A DNA stretch of 64,000 bases, taken from positions 153,606 through 217,605 of the IMG/VR virus record IMGVR_UViG_3300046543_000266, one strand, 5' to 3'. Position numbers and translations under genes: made by a program. Below are positions 14,925 to 40,397 of the stretch, one piece after another (within the stretch, counting starts at the first letter, position 1; every line of letters begins with the position of its first letter). The notes below the pieces were generated by a model. The model was not told the DNA's origin. It saw only the letters and a list, made by a program, of their open reading frames with translations, and searched no databases.

Positions 14925-16463
14925 TTAGCGACGTGCCTTCTTCACCGGAGCCTTCTTACGTGCGGGCGGCTCGTCGTCCTCGTCTTCATCTTCGTCGTCG
15001 AAGTCATCGTCATCTTCATCTTCTTCCTCGACGACCTTCTTGCTTTTGGCTGCCGTCTTCTTGGCGGGAGCCTTGGCTACCGGCTTCTTGGCACCCTTCT
15101 TGGGCGGCGGGGCTTCGTCTTCATCTTCGTCGTCGAAGTCATCTTCATCTTCGTCATCCGAATCTTCGTCCTCGTCCTCGTCTTCCTCGACGGCGGCCTT
15201 CTTGCCCTTGGCTACAGGCTTCTTCGCCGGGGCTTTCTTGGCACCCTTCTTCGGAGCCGGCTCGTCGTCTTCGTCTTCGTCTTCGTCCTCGTCGTCGAGA
15301 TCGTCGTCTTCGTCTTCCGAGTCTTGATCATCCTCGTCGTCCGAATCTTCGTCCTCGTCTTCATCATCGCCGAAGTCGTCCTCGTCTTCTTCGTCTTCCT
15401 CGACCTTCTTGCCCTTCTTGGCCGGTGCAGCCTTACCCTTCTTGGGCGGCGGTGCATCGTCCTCGTCTTCATCTTCGTCGTCGAAGTCATCGGACTCTTC
15501 GTCCTCGTCTTCTTCGTCTTCCTCAGCAGCCTTCTTGCCCTTGCCCTTTGCCGGAGCAGCCTTCTTGGCGGGAGCCGGTTTGCCCTTGCCCTTCTTCGGC
15601 GCCGGTTCGTCGTCCTCGTCCTCGTCTTCCTCGTCGAGGTCTTCGTCCTCTTCGTAGTCGTCTTCAGCAGCCTTCTTGCCCTTCGACTTCACCTTGATGC
15701 CCATGCGCTTTGCCCACGATTCGTAGTCACGCTTGGTTTCTTCTTCCGTCGATTCAGCAGCCAGATCCGACAGGTCCCACGTGAGGAATGCCAGTTCTTC
15801 TTCGGTCAGCGGCGAACGCTCGCCGATCTGCACGGAGTACTGCTCAGCCGGTGCCTTCGTGCTGTCGAACATGATACGCACGTCGCAACCGAACTTATCG
15901 TGGCTGACTGCGTAGGCCGTCGTGCTGCCAGTCTTCTTCGACGTTACCGTGTTGAGGGGCTTCAGTTCAGCCAGCTTGCGGATAGCGCCGCCCGGCAGTG
16001 CCAGAGCAACCCACGGTGTCCACGTTTCCGAGTCCTTGTCCTTGTGGCCCGACTTGCGTTCGGCAGCCGTCGGCTTCGGCAGACGCGACGGTTGCTGCTT
16101 CTGGGCAGCACGCGACAGAGCGTTGCAGTAGAACTTCTTTGCCACCTGAACCGTCTTCTTGTCGTTCTCGCGGATGTCTTCCTCTTCCTGCACGATTGCA
16201 TACCACGGATCGTACTTCGTGGTGTCGAACTGCTGCGTGTCCGGATCGTACGACGGGAAAGAGACCGGGAACTTCGTGGGCTTGCCGTCCTTCGTCTTCG
16301 TCTTGACCCAACCCGTTGCGTAGCTGAACGTCGGTCCGAAGAAGCGGAACGTCACCCACTTCTTTTCCGGGAACTTGAACAGGTTGATCTTGTCGGTGAT
16401 CTTCGGTTTGTCCGAACGGTTGCCAGTGCGGACGTTATCGAAATCTGTACCCTTTTGAGCCAT
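14925..16463 (-). CDS. gp32-like single-stranded DNA-binding protein with long charge-block tail
   Basis: N-terminal ~260-aa aromatic-rich domain (FRFFGP, KKFYCNAL, FGCDVRI, QYSVQ). Adjacent to recA. C-terminal ~250 aa of alternating D/E and K/P/A blocks. Confidence 0.6.
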   Translation of the reverse strand: MAQKGTDFDNVRTGNRSDKPKITDKINLFKFPEKKWVTFRFFGPTFSYATGWVKTKTKDGKPTKFPVSFPSYDPDTQQFDTTKYDPWYAIVQEEEDIRENDKKTVQVAKKFYCNALSRAAQKQQPSRLPKPTAAERKSGHKDKDSETWTPWVALALPGGAIRKLAELKPLNTVTSKKTGSTTAYAVSHDKFGCDVRIMFDSTKAPAEQYSVQIGERSPLTEEELAFLTWDLSDLAAESTEEETKRDYESWAKRMGIKVKSKGKKAAEDDYEEDEDLDEEDEDEDDEPAPKKGKGKPAPAKKAAPAKGKGKKAAEEDEEDEDEESDDFDDEDEDEDDAPPPKKGKAAPAKKGKKVEEDEEDEDDFGDDEDEDEDSDDEDDQDSEDEDDDLDDEDEDEDEDDEPAPKKGAKKAPAKKPVAKGKKAAVEEDEDEDEDSDDEDEDDFDDEDEDEAPPPKKGAKKPVAKAPAKKTAAKSKKVVEEEDEDDDDFDDEDEDEDDEPPARKKAPVKKARR

Positions 16464-18744: not shown

Positions 18745-19218
18745 TTAATAGTCGGCTACTGCGGTGTGATAGCAAACGATGCCGCGTGCGCGCCACATAT
18801 CGACTACGCATTGACGATCGTCGAACGCCATGAACACGTCGGCCAAGTCGAAGCCCGCTTGCTGCACGATCCACGGCTTGTAGTCTTCGTCCGACATCTT
18901 CGCAAGACCGTGGAGGCCGGGCGGACGCATCAGCAGTTGATCGTTGGTGATCTTCGGGCCAACGTACTCGTGAATCTGGTGGAGCGTCATACCCCGATAC
19001 TCAGGACCGTCGCCACGGCTGGTAACGAACAGCATGTGGAACGCCGGATTGTCGTAGAAGGCGCGGTAGACGTGTGCTCCTTGTGGGATCACCGTGTCAT
19101 TGACCGTTGCCTTGATGTAGGCTTCACGATCACCCTTGAAGTAGTGGGCCGTGCGATGGCTGGAGTTGATGAGGCAGCCGTCCAGATCACAGATGACCAG
19201 CTTGATTGGTGCTTGCAT
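18745..19218 (-). CDS. HAD-family phosphatase (T4 PNK phosphatase-like)
   Basis: DLDGCL motif I, FVTSR, LLMRP, FDDRQCVVDMWRARG. Confidence 0.85.
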   Translation of the reverse strand: MQAPIKLVICDLDGCLINSSHRTAHYFKGDREAYIKATVNDTVIPQGAHVYRAFYDNPAFHMLFVTSRGDGPEYRGMTLHQIHEYVGPKITNDQLLMRPPGLHGLAKMSDEDYKPWIVQQAGFDLADVFMAFDDRQCVVDMWRARGIVCYHTAVADY

Positions 19219-19704: not shown

Positions 19705-19925
19705 GTTGGTTCCTTGGGTTGGAAGCGGTTCAATACTACGGCGGTTCCGTCAGCGCTAATACGTTGCCACACTAGCGCTTTCTCTTCGACGCTGAGGAAT
19801 ACCCAATTGTCTACTTCGAATTGGGTACGACCGCAGCCTTTGCATTTGGCGTCGAAGAGCGTGGAACACACGCCGATACATGGGGTGTCGAGTCCGTGCA
19901 TTACTTCATCCGGCGGCCGAGCCAC
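19701..19925 (-). CDS. DUF1289 family Cys-rich protein
   Basis: PCIGVCS...CKGCGRT..EV.NW. Confidence 0.8.
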   Translation of the reverse strand: MARPPDEVMHGLDTPCIGVCSTLFDAKCKGCGRTQFEVDNWVFLSVEEKALVWQRISADGTAVVLNRFQPKEPT

Positions 19926-21001
19926 ATGATACCGGCGGTCAGCCAGTCGTTGCCGAGCTTGGTGTCGAGGTCAAGCTGGAGGCACTGCTTGTTGTACGTG
20001 AGCAGAGCCAGACCGCTCGCCGTGTCGCCGGCCTTGTGCATGTTGTAAGCCCGAGCCATCGGCATTGCCACGTAGTCCAGGAACTGGTTCTCGTAGTCAC
20101 GGGGGTTCACCTGCTCGGTACACACCGTGACGAAGTCGCGCAGTTCGTCTTCGAATTCATCGCTGTCAGCTTGCAGCGGCAGCGGTGCCACGTCTTCGTC
20201 ATACCGACCTGGATAGGCCAGACCACCCTCGACCCCACGGAAGCCGTTGCCCGCGCGCTCGATGAACCGCTTTGTTACGTCGAACTCCGTGTAGATGTGC
20301 AGGTTGTTGGACACCTGATAGTAGTTGCCAACTTCGACGCCGATCTTGTTCGCCAGATATTCATGGAGGAACGCGAAGTGAACGGCGTTGGCGCCGTAGG
20401 CACCCCAGATCATGTCGTTGCTACGGTTCGTCACCGTGATATTGAGCTTGCCCTGACAGATGTCGACGTAGACCGCGGTATTGCACGGCAGGTCCTTCGA
20501 CGTCTGGTTCAGCAGATCCGACGGCTTATACTCGTTGTACATGCCGATGCCGCTTTCGTGCTCGACATCTTCGCCCTTGCCGTCCCACATGCTGATCACA
20601 CAGCGACGGCTGCCCGGATTCTTGCGCAGTTCGGCGATCACGGCGTCCAGCTGATCGTAGCCGAAGTGGTTGCGCCAGCGGAAGCCATACGCGCCGTTGA
20701 GCGTCTCACCGTCGTCGGTGTACTGGAGCATCTGCTTGGCATAGTAGCCGATGGTCGCCACGTCGTTGTTGCCATTCAGCATCCACATGCTTTCGATCAG
20801 GTGGAGGAACGGGTTGGCGTCGCGAGCCTTGCTGAACGACACACGGTGCATCGGGCTCGACCACATGGTCGTCACCGGACGGGGGAAGCGCAGGACCGGA
20901 CCGTTGCGGCTGTCGGTGACAACACCGTTGGCGAGGATCTGGGGGATGCCAATGCTGAGGGCATGGTCCGGGTTAGCTGCATGAATCACAAACATGAACA
21001 A
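19901..21001 (-). CDS. Thymidylate-synthase-fold dUMP hydroxymethylase (putative)
   Basis: DLPCN catalytic Cys, NRSNDMIWGAYGAN with Asn at the uracil-specifying position, SNNLHIY. Confidence 0.75.
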   Translation of the reverse strand: MFMFVIHAANPDHALSIGIPQILANGVVTDSRNGPVLRFPRPVTTMWSSPMHRVSFSKARDANPFLHLIESMWMLNGNNDVATIGYYAKQMLQYTDDGETLNGAYGFRWRNHFGYDQLDAVIAELRKNPGSRRCVISMWDGKGEDVEHESGIGMYNEYKPSDLLNQTSKDLPCNTAVYVDICQGKLNITVTNRSNDMIWGAYGANAVHFAFLHEYLANKIGVEVGNYYQVSNNLHIYTEFDVTKRFIERAGNGFRGVEGGLAYPGRYDEDVAPLPLQADSDEFEDELRDFVTVCTEQVNPRDYENQFLDYVAMPMARAYNMHKAGDTASGLALLTYNKQCLQLDLDTKLGNDWLTAGIMWLGRRMK

Positions 21002-21066: not shown

Positions 21067-22071
21067 TTAGGAGCCTTTGTAGCCGCTGCGAGGCTCGCCT
21101 TCACCGCTGATGACGCGGCAGTATTTGTCGTACTCGCACAGACAGTTGCTGAGGTTCGCTGCGCTCAGGTCGACGAAGCCCGTCTCGAAGCTACCGGACC
21201 ACCACTTCGGAGGCACGATCGTCTTCGCCAACTTGTTCATGTCGCGGCGCAGCTTGACCATCGGCTCGTTGAGAGCATTGCCGCGGACGTCGGCTTTACG
21301 ACCGCCGCTCATCACTCGGTTCATACCCCGCGTAGTGCCCGGTCCAGGACTAGTGAACGTCTCGATGTCCGTGGCATTCATCAGCCACTTCTGGCTGTAC
21401 GTCAGGTCGACGATAACCTGATATGCCATGAACGGTCCCCAACCTTGATACTCACGAAGGGTGGATACGGCCTCTTCCTGGGACTCCTTGAACTTACTGC
21501 GCAATTCCTTGCGATCCTTCCACAGCGGATCCAGCCCAAAGTACGGGATGTAGTAAGCCTTGCTGTTGTCCGGCGGGTTCGTGCCCTTCGGGAACACGCT
21601 GTTGACGATGTAGGCACCGGTGATCAGCTTCTGCTTCTCGTTCTTGATAGCGTTGAACGTGGCGTAGGCTTTCTTGGCACTCCAGCCGTCGACTGGGAAG
21701 CTACCTTCGTCCATCATGCGTTGCAGCGTATCCGGCCAGTTGATGATACGAGCCAGCGCCAGCATGAACCACAGGTCCGGATGGTTCTGGTACGGCGTGA
21801 TGATGTTGTCGATTATCCACTTGCTGACCGTGTCGAGCTCACGGTAGATGTTGCAGAAGCGGTAAGCGCGCAGCACTGGATCGTTGGTCCACGGCTTGGC
21901 CTTGCCTACGTGATAGCGCTTCAGGTAGATAGAGTGGCGCTCGATCCAGAACTTCGTGATCGACTCTACCTTGTTTTGATCTTCGGGCTGGAACAGATAG
22001 GGCAGCTTCTTCGGAGCCGCCGCTGGCTGATCAAACAGACTGCCTTGACTGGCGTTTGTTTTGCGCTTCAT
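21067..22071 (-). CDS. 5-hmdU DNA kinase (aGPT-Pplase1 family)
   Basis: ERHSIYLKR..G...PWTNDPVLRAYRFCNIYRELD signature, GWGPFMAYQ, LSNCLCEYDKY. Start at ATG 22071 with ATGA overlap. Confidence 0.8.
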   Translation of the reverse strand: MKRKTNASQGSLFDQPAAAPKKLPYLFQPEDQNKVESITKFWIERHSIYLKRYHVGKAKPWTNDPVLRAYRFCNIYRELDTVSKWIIDNIITPYQNHPDLWFMLALARIINWPDTLQRMMDEGSFPVDGWSAKKAYATFNAIKNEKQKLITGAYIVNSVFPKGTNPPDNSKAYYIPYFGLDPLWKDRKELRSKFKESQEEAVSTLREYQGWGPFMAYQVIVDLTYSQKWLMNATDIETFTSPGPGTTRGMNRVMSGGRKADVRGNALNEPMVKLRRDMNKLAKTIVPPKWWSGSFETGFVDLSAANLSNCLCEYDKYCRVISGEGEPRSGYKGS

Positions 22072-22376
22072 TTGAATAAGCCTCGTGTTCTTTGATTGGC
22101 AATCGTTGCCAGATACGTACCGTGACAGCGCTTGGGATTGCACCAACATCCGAGACGCTGTCCTTTTAAATCACGGCGGATCTCGTCTCGGGTTGGTGGC
22201 GTTTCTCCGTTAGGTGCTTCGAGCAATCCGTCTAGCCACTTCATGTGCTTGTCGCAGCATTCGGTACGCGTGCCGTGAACGCCGACCACAAAGGGATTGC
22301 CGTACTTCTGAGGCCTCCCGATGTAGACGTCGTATTCGGATCGCTCGCAGTGGACAACCAACGGATGGTTCGTCAT
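22068..22376 (-). CDS. DUF4326 family protein
   Basis: VVHC...DVYIGRP.KYGNPF...LGCWCNP..CHG. ATGA overlaps at both ends. Confidence 0.8.
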   Translation of the reverse strand: MTNHPLVVHCERSEYDVYIGRPQKYGNPFVVGVHGTRTECCDKHMKWLDGLLEAPNGETPPTRDEIRRDLKGQRLGCWCNPKRCHGTYLATIANQRTRGLFK

Positions 22377-23167
22377 AGCAGGAAGTGTTCGGCTTCGATT
22401 GCACGAGTGCGCCAGTACATGCACTGGTCACCGAGCGACATGTTGCGAATGTCGTCTTCGGAATAGTACCCGAGCACCTTGCGCGCCAGCGTGTCCACGG
22501 TATGTGCGTGGGTTGTACCCCTATTTACGCTGCCGACCATTTCGTAGCCGAAGAGCTTGAAATCGCGCTCGTACAGACGGTTGATCAGGCCCAGAACATC
22601 TTCGTCCAGTTCTTCGATTTTCAGCTTCGGACCAGTCGGATACTTCGTCTGATCCTTCGAGTGGCCGAACTCTTCGGTTTCCACGCCGATCATTTCACGC
22701 ACCGTTTTCCAGTCGGCATCAAGGCGCTCGTAGCGGCCGATGAAGTCAGCGTAGCACTTGTTGCCTTGATAGAAGAAGTAATGCTGCGGGCAGAAGTGCG
22801 TGTACTTCCAGTCGAAGCGCACACTTACTTCGTTCAGATTGCGGCGCGCGAATTCGTTGAAGTCGGCATCGGCCGGCAGATTGTGTTGGCGCTTGTGCTC
22901 GGCCCACGAACTGATGAGACGAGTGTACGGATCACGCACGAAGCCGAACTTGAAGTACTCCTCGAAGTAGTGATGGGGCCACACTGCCGGGATGTCGGCA
23001 ACGCACACGTGGAACACTTCGATCACACGTTCGAGCTTGGGAATGAACGACTGGTAGTCCAGCTTCAGCGGGTTGCTGTCATACTGGAAGAGGGTGCGGC
23101 GAATCGACGTTCCTGCAACCTTTGGGTTGTGCAAAAACATGAACTTGTTTTGGTCACTGATGATCAT
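22373..23167 (-). CDS. PAPS-dependent sulfotransferase (Sulfotransfer_2 / carbohydrate sulfotransferase-like)
   Basis: 5'-PSB loop FLHNPKVAGTS, 3'-PB motif FVRDPYTRLIS, DFIGRYERLDADW. Confidence 0.85.
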   Translation of the reverse strand: MIISDQNKFMFLHNPKVAGTSIRRTLFQYDSNPLKLDYQSFIPKLERVIEVFHVCVADIPAVWPHHYFEEYFKFGFVRDPYTRLISSWAEHKRQHNLPADADFNEFARRNLNEVSVRFDWKYTHFCPQHYFFYQGNKCYADFIGRYERLDADWKTVREMIGVETEEFGHSKDQTKYPTGPKLKIEELDEDVLGLINRLYERDFKLFGYEMVGSVNRGTTHAHTVDTLARKVLGYYSEDDIRNMSLGDQCMYWRTRAIEAEHFLL

Positions 23168-24077
23168 TGAGCAGTCTCTTGAGGTATTCGCGGTCTTTGT
23201 TTTGAAACGCCAGTTCGGCCTTCAGTAGTAATTTACCCTTCTCGCGGAACTTGGCGCGCTTTTCTTTGTCTTTGAACAGGCCCGGTGCGTTCATGAAGTC
23301 GACGCGCAGGAAGGACGCAACGTGCTGAGCTTGCTTGCCGCGCTTGATCAAACCTGGGAACATCACCATCTGGCGCAGGAACGAGTCGTGGACATGCTGG
23401 ACCTTGCGCTCGCTGCCTGCACCACCTTGATCTTTCGGGTCGAAGGTGGTGTTCCACAGCATGTGATAGTCGACGACCGAACGATAGCCGTTGCACAGCA
23501 CCGCCAGATTGTGAACTGTGTCGATGCCCCACAGATCGCGCGTTTCCTTCTTGTCGATGCAGTGCAGCAGGATGTTCACATCGTAGCCCGCGACGTTGGT
23601 ACACTTGTGATTCTTGCGCTCCAGTCCCCAACGTTCGATGATGTTCTTGTGCATGAAGTAAGCGCCAGCGCCGACCAGCGCGTTACCCTTGCGGAACAGT
23701 TGCGGAGCCCTCTTCAGGAACCACTCGTCCGCAGCGCTGATGTCTTTGGTTGCGCCCACGTACTTGTCACCACGACGACCGTAGAACAGCATGTCGTCCT
23801 CTATCACCATTGCGAACTTGGCCCCCTGCTTGCGATGATGATCGAACACCGAGTAGCGCTTGTTCGGCAGCAGGATGTCGTCCTTGGTGCGCAAGAAGTC
23901 CACGTGCTTGGCGTAGGCTTCCTTCTTGTGGGCCGCATGCTCTGAGGCCGGGCACACCACTGTGATGTGCTTCTGCACTTCAGGGGACAGGTAGGACAGC
24001 GTCTTCTGCCGTCCTACTCGCCCCTTGGTCAGCAGGTAGATGTGGTAGTCTTTATCCATATGATACGTAGGTTCCAA
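23154..24077 (-). CDS. GT-A glycosyltransferase (TET-associated/GREB1/base-J GT-like), paralog 3
   Basis: LLTKGR..Q.TL...VVCPASE, KR..V, VIEDDMLF. Confidence 0.65.
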   Translation of the reverse strand: MEPTYHMDKDYHIYLLTKGRVGRQKTLSYLSPEVQKHITVVCPASEHAAHKKEAYAKHVDFLRTKDDILLPNKRYSVFDHHRKQGAKFAMVIEDDMLFYGRRGDKYVGATKDISAADEWFLKRAPQLFRKGNALVGAGAYFMHKNIIERWGLERKNHKCTNVAGYDVNILLHCIDKKETRDLWGIDTVHNLAVLCNGYRSVVDYHMLWNTTFDPKDQGGAGSERKVQHVHDSFLRQMVMFPGLIKRGKQAQHVASFLRVDFMNAPGLFKDKEKRAKFREKGKLLLKAELAFQNKDREYLKRLLNDHQ

Positions 24078-24570
24078 CCCACCCTTTATGGTGTTCTTTT
24101 ATACCGCCGCAGACGGCCTTCATGCAAGAGTAGTCTAGACCGTGAATGCGGCATAGACCCCTGAGATTGTTTCCAATGTAGCTCACCCAACGTGGAGAAG
24201 TCACGTGGTAGCCGCGCGCCAGCTTGTTGCCAATCTCCACATCACCGCCGTTGAGGGCGCGCTCCGACAAGTTCTGAGCGGTTGTGATGAACCGGCAGTT
24301 ACCCCAGACGTAATCACCGACGTCACCGAGGCGACCCATCTGGAATTCGGATACTGCCTTTCCGATCTGATCGGGGTGTTTTATACCGGCACGTTTCGCG
24401 AGCTTCATGTACTGGCGGAAGGTCAGCAAACAGACGCAACCACGACGACTAGCATTTCCGCGTAGATCGCGCCATTTCCTTCGCCATTGAAACCAGTAGC
24501 TCTGATCGAAGCTGAGCTTCTGCAGCACACCACAAGCTTCCTCTTCAGTTAGAACACGATCCCGAGTCAT
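24052..24570 (-). CDS. Free-standing HNH-like homing endonuclease
   Basis: MGRLGDVGDYVWGNCRFITTAQN beta-beta-alpha-like motif. Paralog of 39780..40397. Confidence 0.6.
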   Translation of the reverse strand: MTRDRVLTEEEACGVLQKLSFDQSYWFQWRRKWRDLRGNASRRGCVCLLTFRQYMKLAKRAGIKHPDQIGKAVSEFQMGRLGDVGDYVWGNCRFITTAQNLSERALNGGDVEIGNKLARGYHVTSPRWVSYIGNNLRGLCRIHGLDYSCMKAVCGGIKEHHKGWVGTYVSYG

Positions 24571-25337
24571 TAGACCAGCCCTCCGATTTTAGCAGCACCC
24601 CTCCAACTGATGCGAGTGTTGGAATCCGGGTGTTGGGCCGATGGCGGCTTTTCCTTCACGACATCGGGGTGCAGCTTGAGCAGCTTCTGCAGCGCAGCCT
24701 TCGCCATATCACGGGTACGTTCACCTTCTAGCCCACCTGGAGCGTCGGCCTTACGCTGCGCCACCGCCATGTCGTACGTGAGGGCGATTCGCGTTCCACC
24801 CTTGAGTAGTTGGAGCGTGTAGTCTATGTCCTCGTACGGAAATAAACGATCCCACACGATCTTCTTTACGGTGCCGCGGGACATGCCGAAGGCGAATCCT
24901 AGATGGCTGTTCTCTTTGATACCACCCTTCGGCGCGAAAGCCTTGGTCCCGAGCCCGACGCACTTGTAGCGCGAGCACAGGTCCGGAAGCACCTTGGTCC
25001 AGAAGCCCTTGGTCACTTCGGGAACCGTCGACGCCACGACGTGCTTGTCCTGCTCCTTATCGAAGGCATACAGGTACAGATCGTCGTCGAACATGAACGC
25101 GTACTTGTGCGGGCTGTTCTCCATGATCCACTGGCGCTTGGCACTCAGCGTCTGGATGGACTTCGGCTGCGCCAGCACGTTGACCTTCGGGTAGTTGGCC
25201 TTGAGGATAACGACTTCATCCTTGGGGCATACCAGAGTGACGTGACCGTGCATTCCCTTAGGCAACCGCTCGACCGTCAGCTGGTTGGCAGTACGGCCCC
25301 GCGTTGGGATGTAGATATGATAGTTGATCTTGGACAT
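24570..25337 (-). CDS. GT-A glycosyltransferase (TET-associated/GREB1/base-J GT-like), paralog 2
   Basis: YIPTRGR..QLT, LVCPKDE, KRQWI, MFDDDL, YEDIDYTLQLL. Confidence 0.7.
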   Translation of the reverse strand: MSKINYHIYIPTRGRTANQLTVERLPKGMHGHVTLVCPKDEVVILKANYPKVNVLAQPKSIQTLSAKRQWIMENSPHKYAFMFDDDLYLYAFDKEQDKHVVASTVPEVTKGFWTKVLPDLCSRYKCVGLGTKAFAPKGGIKENSHLGFAFGMSRGTVKKIVWDRLFPYEDIDYTLQLLKGGTRIALTYDMAVAQRKADAPGGLEGERTRDMAKAALQKLLKLHPDVVKEKPPSAQHPDSNTRISWRGAAKIGGLV

Positions 25338-26071
25338 CAGAAGCGAGCCTCGTTTCTGCGTTGGAATTCCGCCAGATGCTCAGGCGTACCCAGATTGGTG
25401 AACTGACGGGTCTCGAAGTACCGCAGCGGCAGTCGTGTGATCCCGTTGATGACGGCGCTCAGTGGCAGTTCGGCATAAGGCTTTCTGTTGCGCTCGGCTT
25501 CAAGGAACGCATCCGCCATGTCGTCCACGTTACGGAACCAGTAGCAGCCAGTGTTGATGTAGTCGGAGATCCGCAGCTTCTCGGACAGACCATGGAACAC
25601 GGCAGTCTTACGCCACGCCGAATGATACTTGGCTGGATTGTTCAGGAAAGAGTACTCTTCCGACCCGCTCTTGTCTTCGTAGGCAATGACGCCGGAGCTG
25701 CCCTCGATGACTGCTTCGGTCATGGTGTACTTGAGGTCGACGTGTGCCGAGCAGTCACAGTCGAAGATGATGACCGGTCCTTCACGCGGTGGATCGCACA
25801 TCAACGCCAGAGCCATCGCGCTGAATGCCGGACCCGGCGAAACGTCTTCGAGATAGTGGACGGCCTTGAAGGTATCCCCGTACTGTGCGAGCAGCTCCTC
25901 GTCCTTGCGCAGGATCAGGATCTCGACGTCCGACGGTTCCAGCCCATACGAGTCGATAACCCATCGGTACATCGGGACGCCCGGAAGTACTTCGATGAAC
26001 GGCTTGCTGACCGGGAATCCCTGCTCCCGGAAGCGTGAGCCCATTCCGGCGGCGGACATTAGATAGCGCAT
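25337..26071 (-). CDS. Sugar-phosphate nucleotidyltransferase-like protein
   Basis: AAGMGSRF.....SKPFI, GPAFSA, FDCD, INTGCYWF, LGTPE. Confidence 0.75.
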   Translation of the reverse strand: MRYLMSAAGMGSRFREQGFPVSKPFIEVLPGVPMYRWVIDSYGLEPSDVEILILRKDEELLAQYGDTFKAVHYLEDVSPGPAFSAMALALMCDPPREGPVIIFDCDCSAHVDLKYTMTEAVIEGSSGVIAYEDKSGSEEYSFLNNPAKYHSAWRKTAVFHGLSEKLRISDYINTGCYWFRNVDDMADAFLEAERNRKPYAELPLSAVINGITRLPLRYFETRQFTNLGTPEHLAEFQRRNEARF

Positions 26072-27597
26072 GATTGCTGTTCCATGAGTTGGTATATTTC
26101 TTGGCCCTTCTTGAACAGAGCCAGTTGTCGTTGCAGCGAATCGCTGTGTAGCGGCAGCATTGAGAAGAACAGCAGCGCAGTCATCGCCAGCACTTCTTGG
26201 AAGTCGATACCGAAGCGCTCCCGAACTACGACGCTGAAGTAACTAATGACCTCACGGTTCAGCGGAGGCGGGTTGATTGCCGAGACACTGTAGTGCCCGG
26301 CGATAATCGAGTCGTAGCCAACCATCGAGTGCAGCAGCTTTGCCAACTCGTAGCGGACGTCGCCGTATATGGAGCGCTCGTCGAATCCGTTGAGGCCGCG
26401 CGGGTCAAACACCTTGATGCTATTAGTGCGATGGTCATACGCGATGTTGCTGAAGCACAGGTCACCATGAACTACCGAGATACGGTCAGGGCGATCGGGT
26501 ATCTGTGCGATGCAGTGCTCGGACAATGCCGTAAGCTCAGGCACAATCTCCGAGAAGGTGTCGGACTGGCCGCTGGACTGACCACTGAGTTGTAGCTGCT
26601 GGATGCGCTGGCGAGTCTTACCTTCGATGAGCTCACGGAACGCCGCCGCTTCATGCAGGACGGTCTCTGAGTCGATATGGTGTCCCGGGTCACCACCAAT
26701 GAAGTCGAGGCACTTGTCGATGATGGTGTGCCACACACCAAACTCTTGATTGCCGAACACGTACAGTTCAGCCAGCGTCGGCAGCGGCAGGTACTCGATC
26801 TCGTAGGATCCGTAGCAGTCGTACGACAGCAGGGCCGGAGTGTACTTACGCAGCTTGACTGGGAGGTTGCTGTACCAATCGAACTCAGCGTGGATCTTGG
26901 CTGGAGTACCACTCTTACTCACCACGTTGTCTTCGATGCGAAGTTGGTTGAAATGCCGCGACGTCAGGAAGTTCTGCTTGGACAGGAAGTAGGTAGCAGC
27001 GTGTCCGAAGTCAAACCAGTCGACGCCGTCCGTATAGTCCTGATAGGTTACGGCGACTTCGTCGTGAATCCAATCCAGGGCTTCACTGATATCGTCGTCA
27101 GGTGCTATCACACGCGCTACCGTGTTGAGCGGAGCCATGAAGTATCCGATGAACACAGCATTGCGGCCGTTATCCAAGCGTATATCCAACCAGTTGAAGT
27201 TACCCGGACGGGTCGCAGCCACCCCGATGCACGGAGTGGTCGCCCACTTGCTGATCAGTGTATCGCCCCACAGAACGTGTAGTTCCACACCCTCACAGTT
27301 TCGAGCACCGTTCAAGTGGTTCACTATCCTGGTCACCGCATAGTACAGAACGTGCGACAACGGACGTGGGTGCTTGGACGAGTACTCACTTAACATGGTC
27401 ACGCGATCATCGCACGGCGGCATCGGGAAATCTTCCGGATGTGTGACAAATACCTTGTCGAAGTCTGCACCCATCTTCAGCTGATGTTGGATCAACGACT
27501 TGCCAGCTACCGGAATGCGTGAGGCGGGCAGCTTACCGAACATGAACTGAAGCTCGGGGTTGCACAGCGCTGAAGACAGGATAAGCAGGACCTTCAT
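26059..27597 (-). CDS. Nucleotidyltransferase-like + APH/choline-kinase-like fusion (capsule-biosynthesis-type)
   Basis: N-terminal FGKLPASRIPVAG, WFDFGH, C-terminal VVHGDLCFSNI and KVFDPRG kinase motifs. Start at ATG 27597. Confidence 0.75.
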   Translation of the reverse strand: MKVLLILSSALCNPELQFMFGKLPASRIPVAGKSLIQHQLKMGADFDKVFVTHPEDFPMPPCDDRVTMLSEYSSKHPRPLSHVLYYAVTRIVNHLNGARNCEGVELHVLWGDTLISKWATTPCIGVAATRPGNFNWLDIRLDNGRNAVFIGYFMAPLNTVARVIAPDDDISEALDWIHDEVAVTYQDYTDGVDWFDFGHAATYFLSKQNFLTSRHFNQLRIEDNVVSKSGTPAKIHAEFDWYSNLPVKLRKYTPALLSYDCYGSYEIEYLPLPTLAELYVFGNQEFGVWHTIIDKCLDFIGGDPGHHIDSETVLHEAAAFRELIEGKTRQRIQQLQLSGQSSGQSDTFSEIVPELTALSEHCIAQIPDRPDRISVVHGDLCFSNIAYDHRTNSIKVFDPRGLNGFDERSIYGDVRYELAKLLHSMVGYDSIIAGHYSVSAINPPPLNREVISYFSVVVRERFGIDFQEVLAMTALLFFSMLPLHSDSLQRQLALFKKGQEIYQLMEQQSCAI

Positions 27598-27629
27598 TAT
27601 GACCTCGGATTGTTGTGGGCGTACTACCC

Positions 27630-27637
27630 TATTTACT
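27630..27637 (-). promoter_or_regulatory. AGTAAATA motif
   Basis: Overlaps the TAA of the upstream GT gene. Confidence 0.55.
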
Positions 27638-28511
27638 TCTGGCTGGCAGCATAGCATTTCTGCCAGTAGATGATGACTTCCTTGCGGGAGATGCTCTCTT
27701 TGTACTTACGGTCCACCACCTTGACGAACGGCTCGTGCGCACGCGCCAGCTTGACCGCAGCGATGTCCGAGCGCTTGATCGTCCGCTCTTCGAATGCCCC
27801 ACCCTTTGCCCCGTAGGACAGCGGGTTGACTACGAAGTTGTTCATGATTAGATTGGGGATGCCGCGCTTGAGCAGATGCAAGGTCACGTTGAAGTCTTCG
27901 CGGAACTTGATCTCGTCGAAGCGGATGTCGTTGTCGAGTAGCGTGCGGCGGTGATGACCCATCGCGTGCATGGCGCGACCGGCTTCCATGGTTTCCTTGC
28001 GCTGCCGATTGTTGTTCTGCCGTGAAGCAATGCAGGTATGCCGATACTCACGTTCGAGCATGGCATCACGGATGAAGTCGAAGCGGCGGATCTTCTGCTC
28101 GTCGGTGAAGCCGTCCTTGAACAGGAACAGCACACCCTTCTTCTTGTACTCAGGCAGCACATCCCACTGCACCTTCTTGGGGTCGAAGGCTCGATACTTC
28201 TTGTTGCAGCGCCGGAAGAAGTACATGTCGTCGTCCATCTGGAAGATGTTGTCCGACTTGACGTTCTCGATGATCCACTGGCGCTTCTTGGCGATGCCGT
28301 CCACCGTCGGATCGTCGATAGCGTACACCAGATCGTGTTTATACTTCTTCTTTAAGGCCCGCGCATCTTCGAGGGTCGAAGTAATGAGCAGTACCTTGGC
28401 ACGCAGTTCTTCGGGGATGCCCAAGAACGTCACTTGGCGATCCACCCGTTGATGCGTTGGTATGACCAGCTGAAAGTCTTTATCAGCCACGAGGAGTCTG
28501 TTCTTGAACAT
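27633..28511 (-). CDS. GT-A glycosyltransferase (TET-associated/GREB1/base-J GT-like), paralog 1
   Basis: VIPTHQR..Q.T, KRQWI, QMDDDMYF, REDFNVTLHLLKRG, GAKGG. Confidence 0.7.
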   Translation of the reverse strand: MFKNRLLVADKDFQLVIPTHQRVDRQVTFLGIPEELRAKVLLITSTLEDARALKKKYKHDLVYAIDDPTVDGIAKKRQWIIENVKSDNIFQMDDDMYFFRRCNKKYRAFDPKKVQWDVLPEYKKKGVLFLFKDGFTDEQKIRRFDFIRDAMLEREYRHTCIASRQNNNRQRKETMEAGRAMHAMGHHRRTLLDNDIRFDEIKFREDFNVTLHLLKRGIPNLIMNNFVVNPLSYGAKGGAFEERTIKRSDIAAVKLARAHEPFVKVVDRKYKESISRKEVIIYWQKCYAASQK

Positions 28512-28522
28512 GCCCGAGCCTG

Positions 28523-29227
28523 TTAGTAGGTGAGAACGAACTTGCGGAATCCGTCAGGTGTGTTCTCGATGGAAGGGTAGCCAGTGGCCTCGACGTTGTA
28601 CTTGGTGACGCCGTGCTCGACCGTGGTGGCGGGAACCATCAGACCACGCAGTTCGAAGTCGTCGAACAGATACTCTTCCATCGTGGCTGCGTTGATAACG
28701 CGCCACTGATTGGTGTGGCCGTCCGAATGCGTGTTGTACCGGATGTAGTACTTCTTGTGACCGGTCGTCACCACCTTGGCGATCTGACGTGCTTCCTTGT
28801 CGAACTCTTCGGCGCTCTCCAGATAGTTGCCGATCTGATAGTCCACCTCATCGTACTTGGGCGGCACGTACATCTTGTTCGTGTCCTCGAAGCGGCCCTT
28901 GTCGATGGTGTTCATCCACACCTTGAACACGTCGTCTGTGTGATCGAGGAACTGTTCTTGGAACGCGTTGCGCGTGGTTGCCAGCGGACACACGAAGTCG
29001 ACGATAACCCAATGGCCTTGGAAGTGCAGCATCCGAGCCAACTGACCGAGAGTGGTTGCTTGCTTGACGCGGTCCAGGTTGGAGAAGCCCAGATGCGACG
29101 TGATGGTGCTACGCGCCCAGTCAGCGTTGACGTGGATGGCGTTCAGCTTCTGTTGGAGAACCTTTGCCAACGTGGTCTTGCCGCTGCCGGGCAAACCCTG
29201 AATGAAGATGACTTTGTTTTGGCTCAT
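28523..29227 (-). CDS. cysC: Adenylylsulfate (APS) kinase-like protein with C-terminal extension
   Basis: GLPGSGKTTLA, NADWAR...LGFSNLDR, VDFVCPL, VWMNTI...FEDT...Y..P. Confidence 0.75.
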   Translation of the reverse strand: MSQNKVIFIQGLPGSGKTTLAKVLQQKLNAIHVNADWARSTITSHLGFSNLDRVKQATTLGQLARMLHFQGHWVIVDFVCPLATTRNAFQEQFLDHTDDVFKVWMNTIDKGRFEDTNKMYVPPKYDEVDYQIGNYLESAEEFDKEARQIAKVVTTGHKKYYIRYNTHSDGHTNQWRVINAATMEEYLFDDFELRGLMVPATTVEHGVTKYNVEATGYPSIENTPDGFRKFVLTY

Positions 29228-39779: not shown

Positions 39780-40397
39780 TTAGTCGGTGTAGTAACCGGT
39801 CCAGCCTTTGTGGTGAGCAACCGCGCCGCGAAAGACTTTTGATAGTTCACTCTGGTTAAGACCGTGCTTCGCTGCGAACTCTTTCACATTCCGCCCGACG
39901 TATTTCTTTCCGCGTGGACTTAATACCGCGAAGGGTTTAGAGCGAGCTTCGGATACTATCTGATATCCGACGTGAGTGCTTTTTGTCCGACCTCGTAACT
40001 TTTCTGCGCTGCGCGCGACGCTTGGGTCGTTCTCTTTTGTCCGACCTCGCAACTTTTCTGCTGCGACGTAACTTCCACCGTTGACAGTCTTCTCCCACGT
40101 ATTCTGTTCAACCGTGATGAATCTACAGTTACCGACTTCGTAGTCACCGGCATCACCTTTCCGCGCCATTGCATAATGATGTGGTGCTTTGCCAATATCG
40201 TCCGGCCGGGTGAGCTTGGCGCGCTTCGCCAACTTCATATACTGGACAAAGGTTAGGTGACACTCAGCATCTCGTAGCTTGGCATTGCTACGAAGATTAG
40301 TATACTTCCGACGCCACTGCCGCCAGTCGTTGCCGTCGAATCCCGCGGCCCACACAGTAGCTTCTATCAGAAGACGTTCCGCGTTTGATATGCCCAT
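39780..40397 (-). CDS. Free-standing HNH-like homing endonuclease with NUMOD-like repeats
   Basis: MARKGDAGDYEVGNCRFITVEQN, AEKLRGRTK twice, C-terminal HHKGW. Confidence 0.65.
   Translation of the reverse strand: MGISNAERLLIEATVWAAGFDGNDWRQWRRKYTNLRSNAKLRDAECHLTFVQYMKLAKRAKLTRPDDIGKAPHHYAMARKGDAGDYEVGNCRFITVEQNTWEKTVNGGSYVAAEKLRGRTKENDPSVARSAEKLRGRTKSTHVGYQIVSEARSKPFAVLSPRGKKYVGRNVKEFAAKHGLNQSELSKVFRGAVAHHKGWTGYYTD

Follow-up and report, generated by a model that had tools for sequence, protein, structure and literature searches.

What is a sulfotransferase gene doing inside a set of phage genes that make hydroxymethyl-uracil DNA and add sugars to it? The locus lies in a jumbo phage from rhizosphere soil (IMG/VR record IMGVR_UViG_3300046543_000266; complete genome, 217.6 kb), and we analyzed a stretch of 64,000 nucleotides, positions 153,606 to 217,605 of that record, referred to here as the window. 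The original prediction was that the gene encodes a carbohydrate-type sulfotransferase translationally chained to a 5-hmdU DNA kinase, and that it sulfates either (a) the sugar placed on hmdU or (b) the 5-hydroxymethyl group itself, creating a leaving group parallel to the phosphate made by the kinase. Either role would be sulfur chemistry on DNA distinct from phosphorothioation.

A PAPS-type sulfotransferase in a 5-hmdU/glycosyltransferase operon

We first asked whether the gene is what it appears to be, and found that it is. The ORF has an ATG start, and its product scores 85.9 bits (E 6.2e-24) against a cut-off of 22 for Pfam Sulfotransfer_2 (PF03567), covering residues 2–209 and model positions 4–252 of 252, which is far beyond chance. 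Both PAPS-binding motifs are intact. In 77 homologues, Lys-16 of the 5'-phosphosulfate-binding loop and Arg-78 and Pro-80 of the 3'-phosphate-binding motif are invariant, whereas Ser-86 and His-124 are at least 90% conserved; in a 22-sequence alignment, H13, N14, P15, K16, G19, and S21 are invariant. An AF2 model (pLDDT 91.5) matched HS 2-O-sulfotransferase best among solved structures (Z 9.4); the top 23 matches are all sulfotransferases, and the top three are heparan-sulfate O-sulfotransferases. The best matches among Swiss-Prot models were CHST14, CHST11, and CHST9. A sequence search of the PDB with the sulfotransferase profile returned nothing, and Foldseek against the PDB gave only weak hits. 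Sulfate transfer from PAPS was not assayed, and neither was the identity of the acceptor.

The three gene overlaps of the original prediction were read directly from the sequence and are as described. The upstream TAGT gene overlaps the sulfotransferase start by 14 nt (ATGATCATCAGTGA), the sulfotransferase stop TGA (22375–22373) lies inside the ATG of the DUF4326 gene (ATGA), and the DUF4326 stop lies inside the ATG at 22071 of the next gene (ATGA). The same three overlaps occur in L005, a phage contig whose sulfotransferase is 74% identical. This chaining is not specific to one partner, however, because in other relatives the sulfotransferase overlaps by 4 nt with glf, a GT-B glycosyltransferase, a nucleotidyltransferase, or a TAGT instead.

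Features of the module and its surroundings, in window coordinates (L numbers denote related phage contigs)
Coordinates	Strand	Feature	Evidence
22373..23167	-	Sulfotransferase, 264 aa (Sulfotransfer_2, carbohydrate type)	PHROG 3347 E 3e-47; other evidence in text
23105..23131	-	5'-phosphosulfate-binding loop HNPKVAGTS (K16)	Residues 13-21
22910..22936	-	3'-phosphate-binding motif RDPYTRLIS (R78, S86)	Residues 78-86
28523..29227	-	APS-kinase-like P-loop protein, 234 aa, with an unknown C-terminal domain of about 100 aa; probable PAPS supplier	Pfam APS_kinase 56.6 bits (cut-off 21.1); other evidence in text
27633..28511	-	TAGT-family glycosyltransferase 1	PF20691 44.4 bits (cut-off 27.5); pI 9.7
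26059..27657	-	Protein of about 510-532 aa, nucleotidyltransferase-like N-terminal part plus APH-like kinase C-terminal part; probable sugar activation; true start probably at 27597	Weak APH and Fructosamin_kin hits; phrog_24015 E 3e-96 starting at residue 23; phiRSL1 orthologue annotated as NDP-sugar pyrophosphorylase-like
25337..26071	-	Nucleotidyltransferase-like protein, 244 aa	L005 orthologue hits NTP_transf_3 weakly; phiRSL1 orthologue annotated as nucleotidyl transferase
24570..25337	-	TAGT-family glycosyltransferase 2	PF20691 130.8 bits, E 8e-38
24052..24570	-	HNH-type homing-endonuclease-like insert, 172 aa; not part of the pathway	phrog_2081 HNH endonuclease; absent in phiRSL1 and L005; a contig of one sequencing run joins 24059 to 24577 without it
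23154..24077	-	TAGT-family glycosyltransferase 3	PF20691 40.9 bits
22068..22376	-	DUF4326 protein, 102 aa, accessory member	PF14216 E 1e-21; present in L005 and L023, absent from phiRSL1 and most other relatives
21067..22071	-	HMUDK_hel-only protein (aGPT-Pplase clade-1 type), 334 aa; not a P-loop kinase	PF18723 164.7 bits, residues 61-348 of the long ORF; other evidence in text
19901..21001	-	ThyA-like enzyme, probable dUMP hydroxymethylase	PF00303 E 1e-21, the only PF00303 match in the genome; 43% identity, E 1e-95, to PaMx11 gp51
18745..19218	-	HAD_PNKP-type phosphatase, conserved next to the module	PF25109 E 7e-12; also present in L011, L014, L019, and L023

The neighboring helical protein and APS-kinase-like protein

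We next examined the supposed kinase partner. The protein carries only the helical domain (PF18723), has no Walker A motif, and is all-helical in its structural model, with no beta strands. It aligns with PaMx11 gp50 (30% identity, E 4e-34), which also carries only this domain, and shows no similarity to the adjacent, experimentally proven P-loop kinase gp49 (BLASTP E 3.8; Table 1 of PMC8989533). Furthermore, PF18748, the P-loop kinase domain, has no match in the complete genome even at E up to 1, and neither a gp49-like protein nor an amino-acid:DNA transferase (AADT) was found there. The partner is therefore not a demonstrable 5-hmdU DNA kinase, and the proposed parallel to a phosphate made by such a kinase has no basis in this genome. 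More generally, a Pfam HMUDK_hel hit alone does not identify a kinase. We did not survey all IMG/VR contigs carrying PF18723 for P-loop kinase, APS-kinase-like, and sulfotransferase genes.

The original prediction also missed an APS-kinase-like gene in the same operon, a likely PAPS source. The 24 best PDB sequence hits of its product are all APS kinases or PAPS synthases. However, the protein scores below the NCBIfam equivalog cut-off (TIGR00455, 52.2 against 138.7), with a match covering only residues 4–96 and a shortened lid segment; whether it converts APS to PAPS was not measured. No ATP sulfurylase or CysD gene is present in the phage, and whether the likely hosts lack cysC was not examined. 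The cultured phages DLP_6 and LR756500 carry both a distant sulfotransferase and an APS-kinase-like gene. They were not inspected directly for the helical protein.

These features leave room for another assignment, in which the APS-kinase-like protein is not a PAPS source but the kinase of the module for hmdU-DNA or for a sugar, working with the helical protein, while the sulfotransferase depends on host PAPS. It is the only small Walker-A protein in the cluster and the only small P-loop kinase in the genome, and it co-occurs with the helical protein as tightly as with the sulfotransferase, being missing from a phage that has a sulfotransferase but no helical protein (type III, below). The low equivalog score, truncated lid, and extra domain point the same way. 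Nevertheless, we consider this assignment unlikely. In cultured phages the family is found in only 17 records against 359 that carry the helical protein, with phiRSL1 the only overlap seen, and none of 80 IMG/VR loci with about 50%-identical relatives has a helical protein. The motifs shared with APS kinases (NAD..R, LGFS..DR, and F..P...R) are invariant, and the protein shares only the Walker A motif with gp49.

Conservation of the gene set and the probable acceptor

A scan of IMG/VR with the single protein found nothing, but an alignment-based scan recovered relatives. The set of sulfotransferase, helical protein, ThyA-like hydroxymethylase, and glycosyltransferases recurs in about 13 divergent phage contigs and in the cultured, published Ralstonia phage phiRSL1. 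It co-occurs in the window, phiRSL1, L003, L005, L006, L011, L015, L016, L021–L024, L026, and L121, and an APS-kinase-like gene is detected in 11 of those 13 relatives (not in L006 or L121). Sulfotransferase identity ranges from 29 to 74%, gene order is shuffled, and three different glycosyltransferase families are used, the family differing between cluster types. A distribution of homologues mainly in phages lacking hmdU genes had been named in advance as grounds for rejecting the prediction; instead, the close homologues nearly always sit beside hmdU genes.

Several contexts link the enzyme to a sugar. The nearest cellular homologues (about 40–47% identity over the catalytic domain), in Pantoea dispersa (P0012) and Burkholderia cenocepacia (P0015), lie inside O-antigen clusters with glf, several glycosyltransferases, and wzm/wzt. 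In type II phage clusters, the sulfotransferase start overlaps the stop of a UDP-galactopyranose mutase gene (glf). One near-complete phage of the type III lineage (G006, 97% complete) keeps only glf plus an intact sulfotransferase and lacks the helical protein, ThyA-like, TAGT, and APS-kinase genes, which ties the enzyme to the sugar and not to hmdU. We considered whether the type III sulfotransferase might be a decaying remnant and rejected this, because it keeps nearly all invariant residues and has a short branch.

Our best reading, to which we assign a probability of about 0.5, is that the gene encodes a PAPS-dependent carbohydrate O-sulfotransferase that sulfates a sugar of the glycan built on 5-hmdU, as a fixed component of a phage module that replaces thymine with 5-hydroxymethyl-uracil. 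In this model, the ThyA-like enzyme would make 5-hm-dUMP, which is incorporated into DNA; the 532-aa and 244-aa proteins would activate sugars as nucleotide sugars; the three basic TAGT glycosyltransferases would put the sugars on 5-hmdU in DNA; and the sulfotransferase would add a sulfate ester to one sugar hydroxyl, using PAPS made from host APS by the APS-kinase-like protein. The family, the fold, the intact cofactor motifs, the operon membership, and the conservation of the gene set rest directly on our analysis, whereas we infer that the acceptor is a sugar, that the glycan sits on hmdU in DNA, and that the P-loop protein makes PAPS. Our data do not distinguish sulfation of the nucleotide-sugar donor from sulfation of the DNA-linked glycan, and the bases of virion DNA were not analyzed, as only metagenome contigs are available. 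The likely benefit is a bulkier, more negative DNA decoration that blocks host nucleases. Thus, the original interpretation is partly supported: the carbohydrate-type sulfotransferase and its place among hmdU and glycosyltransferase genes hold, the kinase partner does not, and of the two proposed roles sugar sulfation fits the evidence better.

Some observations fit this model poorly. The role of the conserved helical protein is unexplained in it, and the lack of a recognizable hmdU kinase leaves room for the sulfotransferase or the APS-kinase-like protein to act on hmdU instead. Known carbohydrate sulfotransferases act on finished glycans, and none is known to act on a DNA-linked glycan. In addition, the sulfotransferases are near-neutral (13 of 14 have pI 6.2–7.9), while every TAGT, GT-B, and helical protein in these modules has a pI above 9. 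We considered this as evidence that the enzyme does not touch DNA and acts on a soluble donor; surface electrostatics of the model were not mapped, nor was it co-folded with PAP(S), DNA, or UDP-Galf. A control showed that the charge argument is not decisive, as the proven DNA-modifying proteins gp46 and gp47 of PaMx11 have pI 5.7 and 6.6.

The second role, sulfation of the hydroxymethyl group, is disfavored but not excluded, and the missing P-loop kinase makes it more interesting. In this view, the sulfotransferase, fed by the APS-kinase-like protein, would make 5-sulfooxymethyl-dU in DNA in place of the missing kinase reaction, and the helical protein, a relative of the 5-PmdU group transferases, would displace the sulfate with a nucleophile. 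This gives every conserved member of the module a role and would be the first use of sulfate as a leaving group on a nucleobase in DNA. The best fold hits of the helical protein are PaMx11 gp46 (5-PmdU glycinyltransferase) and HhH glycosylases (8-oxoG glycosylases), although these hits are weak (E 0.3 for gp46, model pLDDT 70). Sulfotransferase-fold enzymes that use sulfate as a leaving group appear among the fold matches of the sulfotransferase (retinol dehydratase 1fmj, LGS1 22ga, and the olefin synthase ST 4gox), and in the window, phiRSL1, L003, and L121 the sulfotransferase lies next to the helical protein. Against this reading, which we regard as unlikely, stand the O-antigen relatives, the best structural matches, which are sugar O-sulfotransferases, the coupling to glf in types II and III, and the type III lineage, which keeps an intact enzyme without ThyA-like or helical genes and nests inside the type II clade.

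Equally doubtful is a non-DNA target, such as a host envelope polysaccharide, a virion glycoconjugate, or a small metabolite, sulfated together with glf or the nucleotide-sugar enzymes, with the gene lying in the operon only because of shared sugar-nucleotide supply or early expression. The type III phages and the non-basic enzyme are compatible with this, more distant phage sulfotransferases (24–28% identity) occur in contigs with no helical protein or TAGT, and virus-rich Sulfotransfer_2 clusters exist in the ESM Atlas. However, in 13 of 15 informative contexts with at least 29% identity, the gene is embedded by 4-nt overlaps among TAGT or GT-B glycosyltransferases, the helical protein, and ThyA-like genes, despite extensive reshuffling. 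The enzyme has no signal peptide or membrane segment, and the C-terminal coiled coil of the cellular homologues is lost.

Comparison with known systems

Compared with HNK-1/CHST-type and heparan-sulfate O-sulfotransferases (e.g. HS2ST, PDB entry 3f5f, and CHST14), the protein shares the Pfam family, the two PAPS-binding motifs, and the fold, but only 14–24% identity. It is a soluble phage protein with no membrane anchor and a phage-specific tail of about 55 aa (conserved LGEQC..WR), and its presumed acceptor is a DNA-linked glycan or its donor, not a glycosaminoglycan. The O-antigen cluster sulfotransferases, themselves uncharacterized as far as we found, carry a long C-terminal coiled coil and a terminal SKS.R.T.PLR motif that the phage proteins lack.

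The thymidine hypermodification pathway of M6, ViI, and PaMx11 (PMC5889632, PMC8989533) shares the ThyA-like dUMP hydroxymethylase and, with the gp50-type protein, the helical component. That pathway uses a P-loop 5-HMUDK plus an amino-acid:DNA transferase; here, glycosyltransferases, sugar-activating enzymes, a sulfotransferase, and an APS-kinase-like protein are present instead. In TAGT (GT-A) glycosylation of hydroxymethylpyrimidines in phage DNA (PMC8256090; bioRxiv 10.1101/2023.12.21.572611), the shared feature is TAGT genes, here three paralogues, next to a ThyS-type hydroxymethylase. The preprint notes accessory epimerases, secondary glycosyltransferases, and APH phosphotransferases near such glycosyltransferases, but neither paper mentions sulfate or a sulfotransferase. 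The hypermodifications of SP-15, YerA41, Carin-5, and RP13 (PMC12686479, PMC9023294) are likewise bulky, anionic, sugar-containing decorations on a T-derived base in large phages, but use a dihydroxypentyl linker and phosphate. No homologue of this sulfotransferase was found in them, as tblastn of 50,697 phage records hit only phiRSL1 at E below 1e-3.

Known phage DNA hypermodifications add sugars, amino acids, polyamines, or phosphate-linked groups. Full-text literature searches, which did not extend to Iyer et al. 2013 (PMC3763556), found no paper linking a sulfotransferase, PAPS, or sulfate to phage DNA hypermodification, none on sulfated DNA glycans, and no analysis of the DNA of this phage or of phiRSL1. 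A sulfate ester on DNA-borne sugars would be a new chemical class of natural DNA modification. It would add fixed negative charge and bulk in the major groove, with consequences for restriction, CRISPR, and glycosylase-based defense, for DNA packaging, and for sequencing of such genomes.

Finally, we compared the region with public sequencing runs. Only Logan contigs of rhizosphere DNA runs contain it and no RNA run was listed. These contigs could not show expression or modification. They did reveal that the HNH insert is polymorphic, as well as three substitutions in the sulfotransferase of one strain, two of them synonymous and one A101T.

The sulfotransferase and its operon

The 64-kb window forms the end of a complete 217,605-bp virus record with direct terminal repeats and 56% G+C. 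Its nearest cultured relative is the Ralstonia jumbo phage phiRSL1, with about 73% nucleotide identity over parts of this region, and near-identical DNA occurs in many rhizosphere metagenome runs. The predicted sulfotransferase gene encodes 264 amino acids and contains the motifs HNPKVAGTS (residues 13-21) and RDPYTRLIS (residues 78-86). When we read the gene junctions from the sequence, the three overlaps described in the original prediction were all present: a 14-nt overlap with the upstream glycosyltransferase gene, an ATGA overlap with DUF4326, and an ATGA overlap between DUF4326 and the next gene, whose real start is therefore 22071. The observation on which the prediction rested was thus confirmed.

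Profile searches matched the protein to Pfam Sulfotransfer_2 with an E-value of 6.2e-24 over almost the whole model and to PHROG 3347 with an E-value of 3e-47. Among 77 homologues, Lys-16, Arg-78, Pro-80, Gln-128, and Asp-202 are invariant, whereas His-13, Ser-21, His-53, Ser-86, and His-124 are at least 90% conserved. An AlphaFold2 model built on that alignment has a mean pLDDT of 91.5. A Foldseek-independent search of 48,161 solved chains placed heparan-sulfate 2-O-, 6-O-, and 3-O-sulfotransferases on top (Z 9.4, 8.7, and 8.4), and ranks 1-23 are all PAPS sulfotransferases. Against Swiss-Prot models, the best matches are CHST14, CHST11, CHST9, CHST10, and other CHSTs, with E-values down to 2e-8. 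The assignment as a carbohydrate-type PAPS sulfotransferase is therefore well supported. About 55 C-terminal residues lie outside the Pfam domain and are conserved only among the phage proteins.

The genes of the operon are listed below in the direction of transcription. The same set, without DUF4326 and the HNH ORF, is found in phiRSL1 as ORF230-238. In the third gene, the PHROG match begins at residue 23 and the orthologue in L005, a metagenomic relative, is 503 aa, so that translation probably starts 20 codons downstream of the first start. Its APH-like kinase plus nucleotidyltransferase-like architecture resembles sugar-1-kinase/uridylyltransferase salvage pairs, although the sugar was not identified.

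Coordinates of the operon genes, in order of transcription, and of further features (window positions unless a locus is named)
Feature	Coordinates	Strand	Remark
APS-kinase-like P-loop protein	28523-29227		
TAGT glycosyltransferase 1			
Protein of about 510-532 aa	26059-27657	-	nucleotidyltransferase-like N-terminal part, APH-like kinase C-terminal part; probable start 27597
Nucleotidyltransferase-like protein			244 aa
TAGT glycosyltransferase 2			
HNH-like ORF	24052-24570	-	172 aa
TAGT glycosyltransferase 3	23154-24077		
Sulfotransferase	22373-23167	-	
DUF4326	22068-22376		
HMUDK_hel protein	start at 22071		matches Pfam HMUDK_hel only
ThyA-like enzyme			
HAD_PNKP phosphatase			
Paralogue of the HNH-like ORF	39786-40340	-	40% identity
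Protein with Asp/Glu runs and Lys/Pro/Ala-rich repeats	14925-16463	-	512 aa
DUF4326 in L005	L005:6414-6719		
DUF4326 in L023	L023:13244-13543		
Second sulfotransferase paralogue in L016	L016:10711-11598		Sulfotransfer_2, 36 bits

The HMUDK_hel protein and the APS-kinase-like protein

The original prediction named the gene at the end of the overlapping chain as a 5-hmdU DNA kinase, but it is not a kinase by any test that we could run. The verified 5-hmdU DNA kinases are P-loop kinases, for example PaMx11 gp49 and M6 gp54 (Table 1 of PMC8989533). The window's protein instead aligns with PaMx11 gp50, the product of the gene next to gp49, at 30% identity over 293 residues (E 4e-34), and shows no similarity to gp49. 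Pfam assigns only HMUDK_hel to gp50, whereas gp49 matches AAA_33 and, weakly, PF18748. GenBank records label homologues of the window's protein as aGPT-Pplase clade 1. Its AlphaFold model, at a moderate pLDDT of 70, is entirely helical, and its best, weak fold hits are the 5-PmdU glycinyltransferase gp46 and 8-oxoguanine glycosylases. M6 gp55, which we take from its position alone to be the gp50 equivalent, was dispensable in the published reconstitution. Searches of the complete genome returned no PF18748 match, no gp49-like sequence, and no amino-acid:DNA transferase (PF18724 or gp46-like). The interpretation offered by the original prediction is therefore only partly supported, as the sulfotransferase assignment holds but that of its partner does not.

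The only small Walker-A protein in the cluster is the APS-kinase-like protein, which the original prediction did not mention. Pfam APS_kinase scores 56.6 bits against a cut-off of 21.1, and a profile of six orthologues hits 24 APS kinases or PAPS synthases first in the PDB, with E-values down to 7.5e-17. The motifs GLPGSGKT, NAD..R, L.F...R, and VDFV.P...R are invariant. However, the protein scores far below NCBIfam's equivalog cut-off (52 against 138.7), its lid is shortened, and it carries a C-terminal domain of about 100 aa of unknown nature. The phage has no ATP sulfurylase or CysD gene, so APS would have to come from the host. We conclude that the protein is most likely a PAPS supplier, a role that is inferred and not shown by these data; the alternative, that it is the module's real kinase, appears unlikely.

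The kinase domain belongs to a very widespread viral family: at least 449 IMG/VR stretches with about 45-57% identity were confirmed by tblastn (loci L041-L120 among them). Of the five members that we read through, four are fused to a cytidylyltransferase-like (HxGH) domain; neither the function of these proteins nor any link to sulfation was established. None of the 80 loci retrieved carries the helical (HMUDK_hel) protein, a TAGT, or a ThyA-like gene, and 11 of 50 records have a weak to moderate Sulfotransfer_2 match. Among cultured phages, only 17 records have the APS-kinase-like protein, against 359 that carry the helical protein. The 17 include phiRSL1 and also DLP_6 and LR756500, which carry distant sulfotransferases too.

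Distribution of the sulfotransferase and its inferred acceptor

Close homologues of the sulfotransferase are rare in cultured phages, with only phiRSL1 found at an E-value below 1e-3 among 50,697 records, but they recur in metagenomes, and their contexts fall into four types (loci bearing homologues are designated by L numbers). Type I comprises the window, L005, L003, L006, L014 (phiRSL1), L015, L016, L024, and, in part, L026, and contains three TAGTs, the roughly 500-aa protein, the 244-aa protein, the sulfotransferase, the helical protein, the APS-kinase-like gene (not seen on the short L006 contig), and the ThyA-like gene. Type II (L011, L021, L022, and L023) contains UDP-galactopyranose mutase (glf), the sulfotransferase, a 438-aa GT-B glycosyltransferase, one TAGT-like protein, the helical protein, the APS-kinase-like gene, and the ThyA-like gene. 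Type III (L017, L019, and L038) contains only glf and the sulfotransferase. Type IV (L121) contains the helical protein, the sulfotransferase, two GT-B glycosyltransferases, the ThyA-like gene, and an HD nucleotidase.

Gene order differs between loci while content is kept. The sulfotransferase overlaps by 4 nt with whichever gene is next to it, so the chaining shows operon membership and not a special tie to the helical protein. DUF4326 recurs in three versions of the module (the window, L005, and L023) at different positions and is absent from the others; it is basic (pI 8.7-9.9), and Aravind's group predicted that it is an enzyme linking NAD/ADP-ribose systems to DNA modification (PMC7824862). 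In L016, a 178-kb relative, a second, divergent sulfotransferase paralogue lies directly downstream of the main one, with the PAPS motifs kept but His-124 replaced by tryptophan.

In a maximum-likelihood tree, type I is monophyletic (100/98), and type III nests inside a type II clade, so it arose by loss of the hmdU genes. The type III lineage L019/L038 (IMGVR_UViG_3300029993_000005, 230 kb, 97% complete) is syntenic with type II but lacks the helical protein, TAGT, APS-kinase-like, and ThyA-like genes. Its intact 297-aa sulfotransferase keeps nearly all invariant residues, and we have no explanation for what the pair of glf and sulfotransferase acts on in this lineage. More distant phage sulfotransferases (24-28% identity) lie in contigs without any of these genes. 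The original prediction had specified that it would be refuted if homologues occurred mainly in phages lacking hmdU genes; this refutation therefore fails for the close family but holds for the distant ones. A non-DNA target for the enzyme was considered as a rival and seems improbable.

The closest named cellular proteins reach 47% identity (Pantoea dispersa, Erwinia) and about 40% (Burkholderia), and lie in O-antigen clusters with wzm/wzt, glf, a DUF4422+GT8 protein, and other glycosyltransferases. They carry a long C-terminal coiled coil that the phage proteins lack. In Pantoea dispersa (L008/L009) and Burkholderia cenocepacia (L010), the homologues sit at the end of galactan-type O-antigen clusters, which, with the coiled coil, is reminiscent of chain-terminating enzymes of ABC-transporter-dependent O-antigen pathways and suggests sulfated O-antigens in these species. 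The cellular relatives and the glf coupling in types II and III point to a sugar acceptor, probably galactose-type at least in type II.

Based on these data, we favor sugar sulfation within a 5-hmdU glycan pathway, with a confidence of about 0.5. The ThyA-like enzyme is 43% identical (E 1e-95) to PaMx11 gp51, and PaMx11 makes a proven hmdU-derived base (PMC8989533), whereas TAGT enzymes are known to glycosylate hydroxymethylpyrimidines in DNA (PMC8256090). The timing of sulfation was not established here. The sulfotransferases are near neutral (13 of 14 have pI 6.2-7.9), in contrast with 26 of 26 TAGTs, 12 of 12 helical proteins, and 5 of 5 GT-B proteins with pI above 9. Together with the lineage retaining only glf and the sulfotransferase, this hints at action on the nucleotide-sugar donor, but proven DNA-acting PaMx11 enzymes have pI 5.7-6.6, so the hint is weak. 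Sulfation of the hydroxymethyl group, replacing the missing kinase, would explain why the helical protein, sulfotransferase, and APS-kinase-like gene travel together without a P-loop hmdU kinase; this reading is doubtful in view of the O-antigen relatives, the glf coupling, and type III.

The phiRSL1 genes have long been annotated as "sulfotransferase-like" and "APS kinase." We found no paper that connects them with DNA modification or reports sulfate on DNA glycans, and the main papers on thymidine hypermodification and on TAGT glycosylation do not mention sulfate, although this reading of the literature did not extend to Iyer et al. 2013. The proposed connection of a sulfotransferase and an APS-kinase-like protein with DNA modification is directly testable because phiRSL1 is in culture.

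Other features of the genome

The 512-aa protein has a C-terminal two-thirds made of long Asp/Glu runs alternating with Lys/Pro/Ala-rich repeats (PAPKKGKG-like). By position, without a test of homology, it corresponds to phiRSL1 ORF222, annotated as a single-strand DNA-binding protein.

The HNH-like ORF between two TAGT genes is a polymorphic insert. A contig of one sequencing run (X7) joins 24059 to 24577 with six other letters in between, and the adjacent 24636-24921 region then shows 37 substitutions, which looks like co-conversion or a divergent flank. phiRSL1 and L005 lack the insert, whereas L015 has it at the same place (68% identity). The paralogue elsewhere in the genome weakly matches the I-HmuI NUMOD-like domain.
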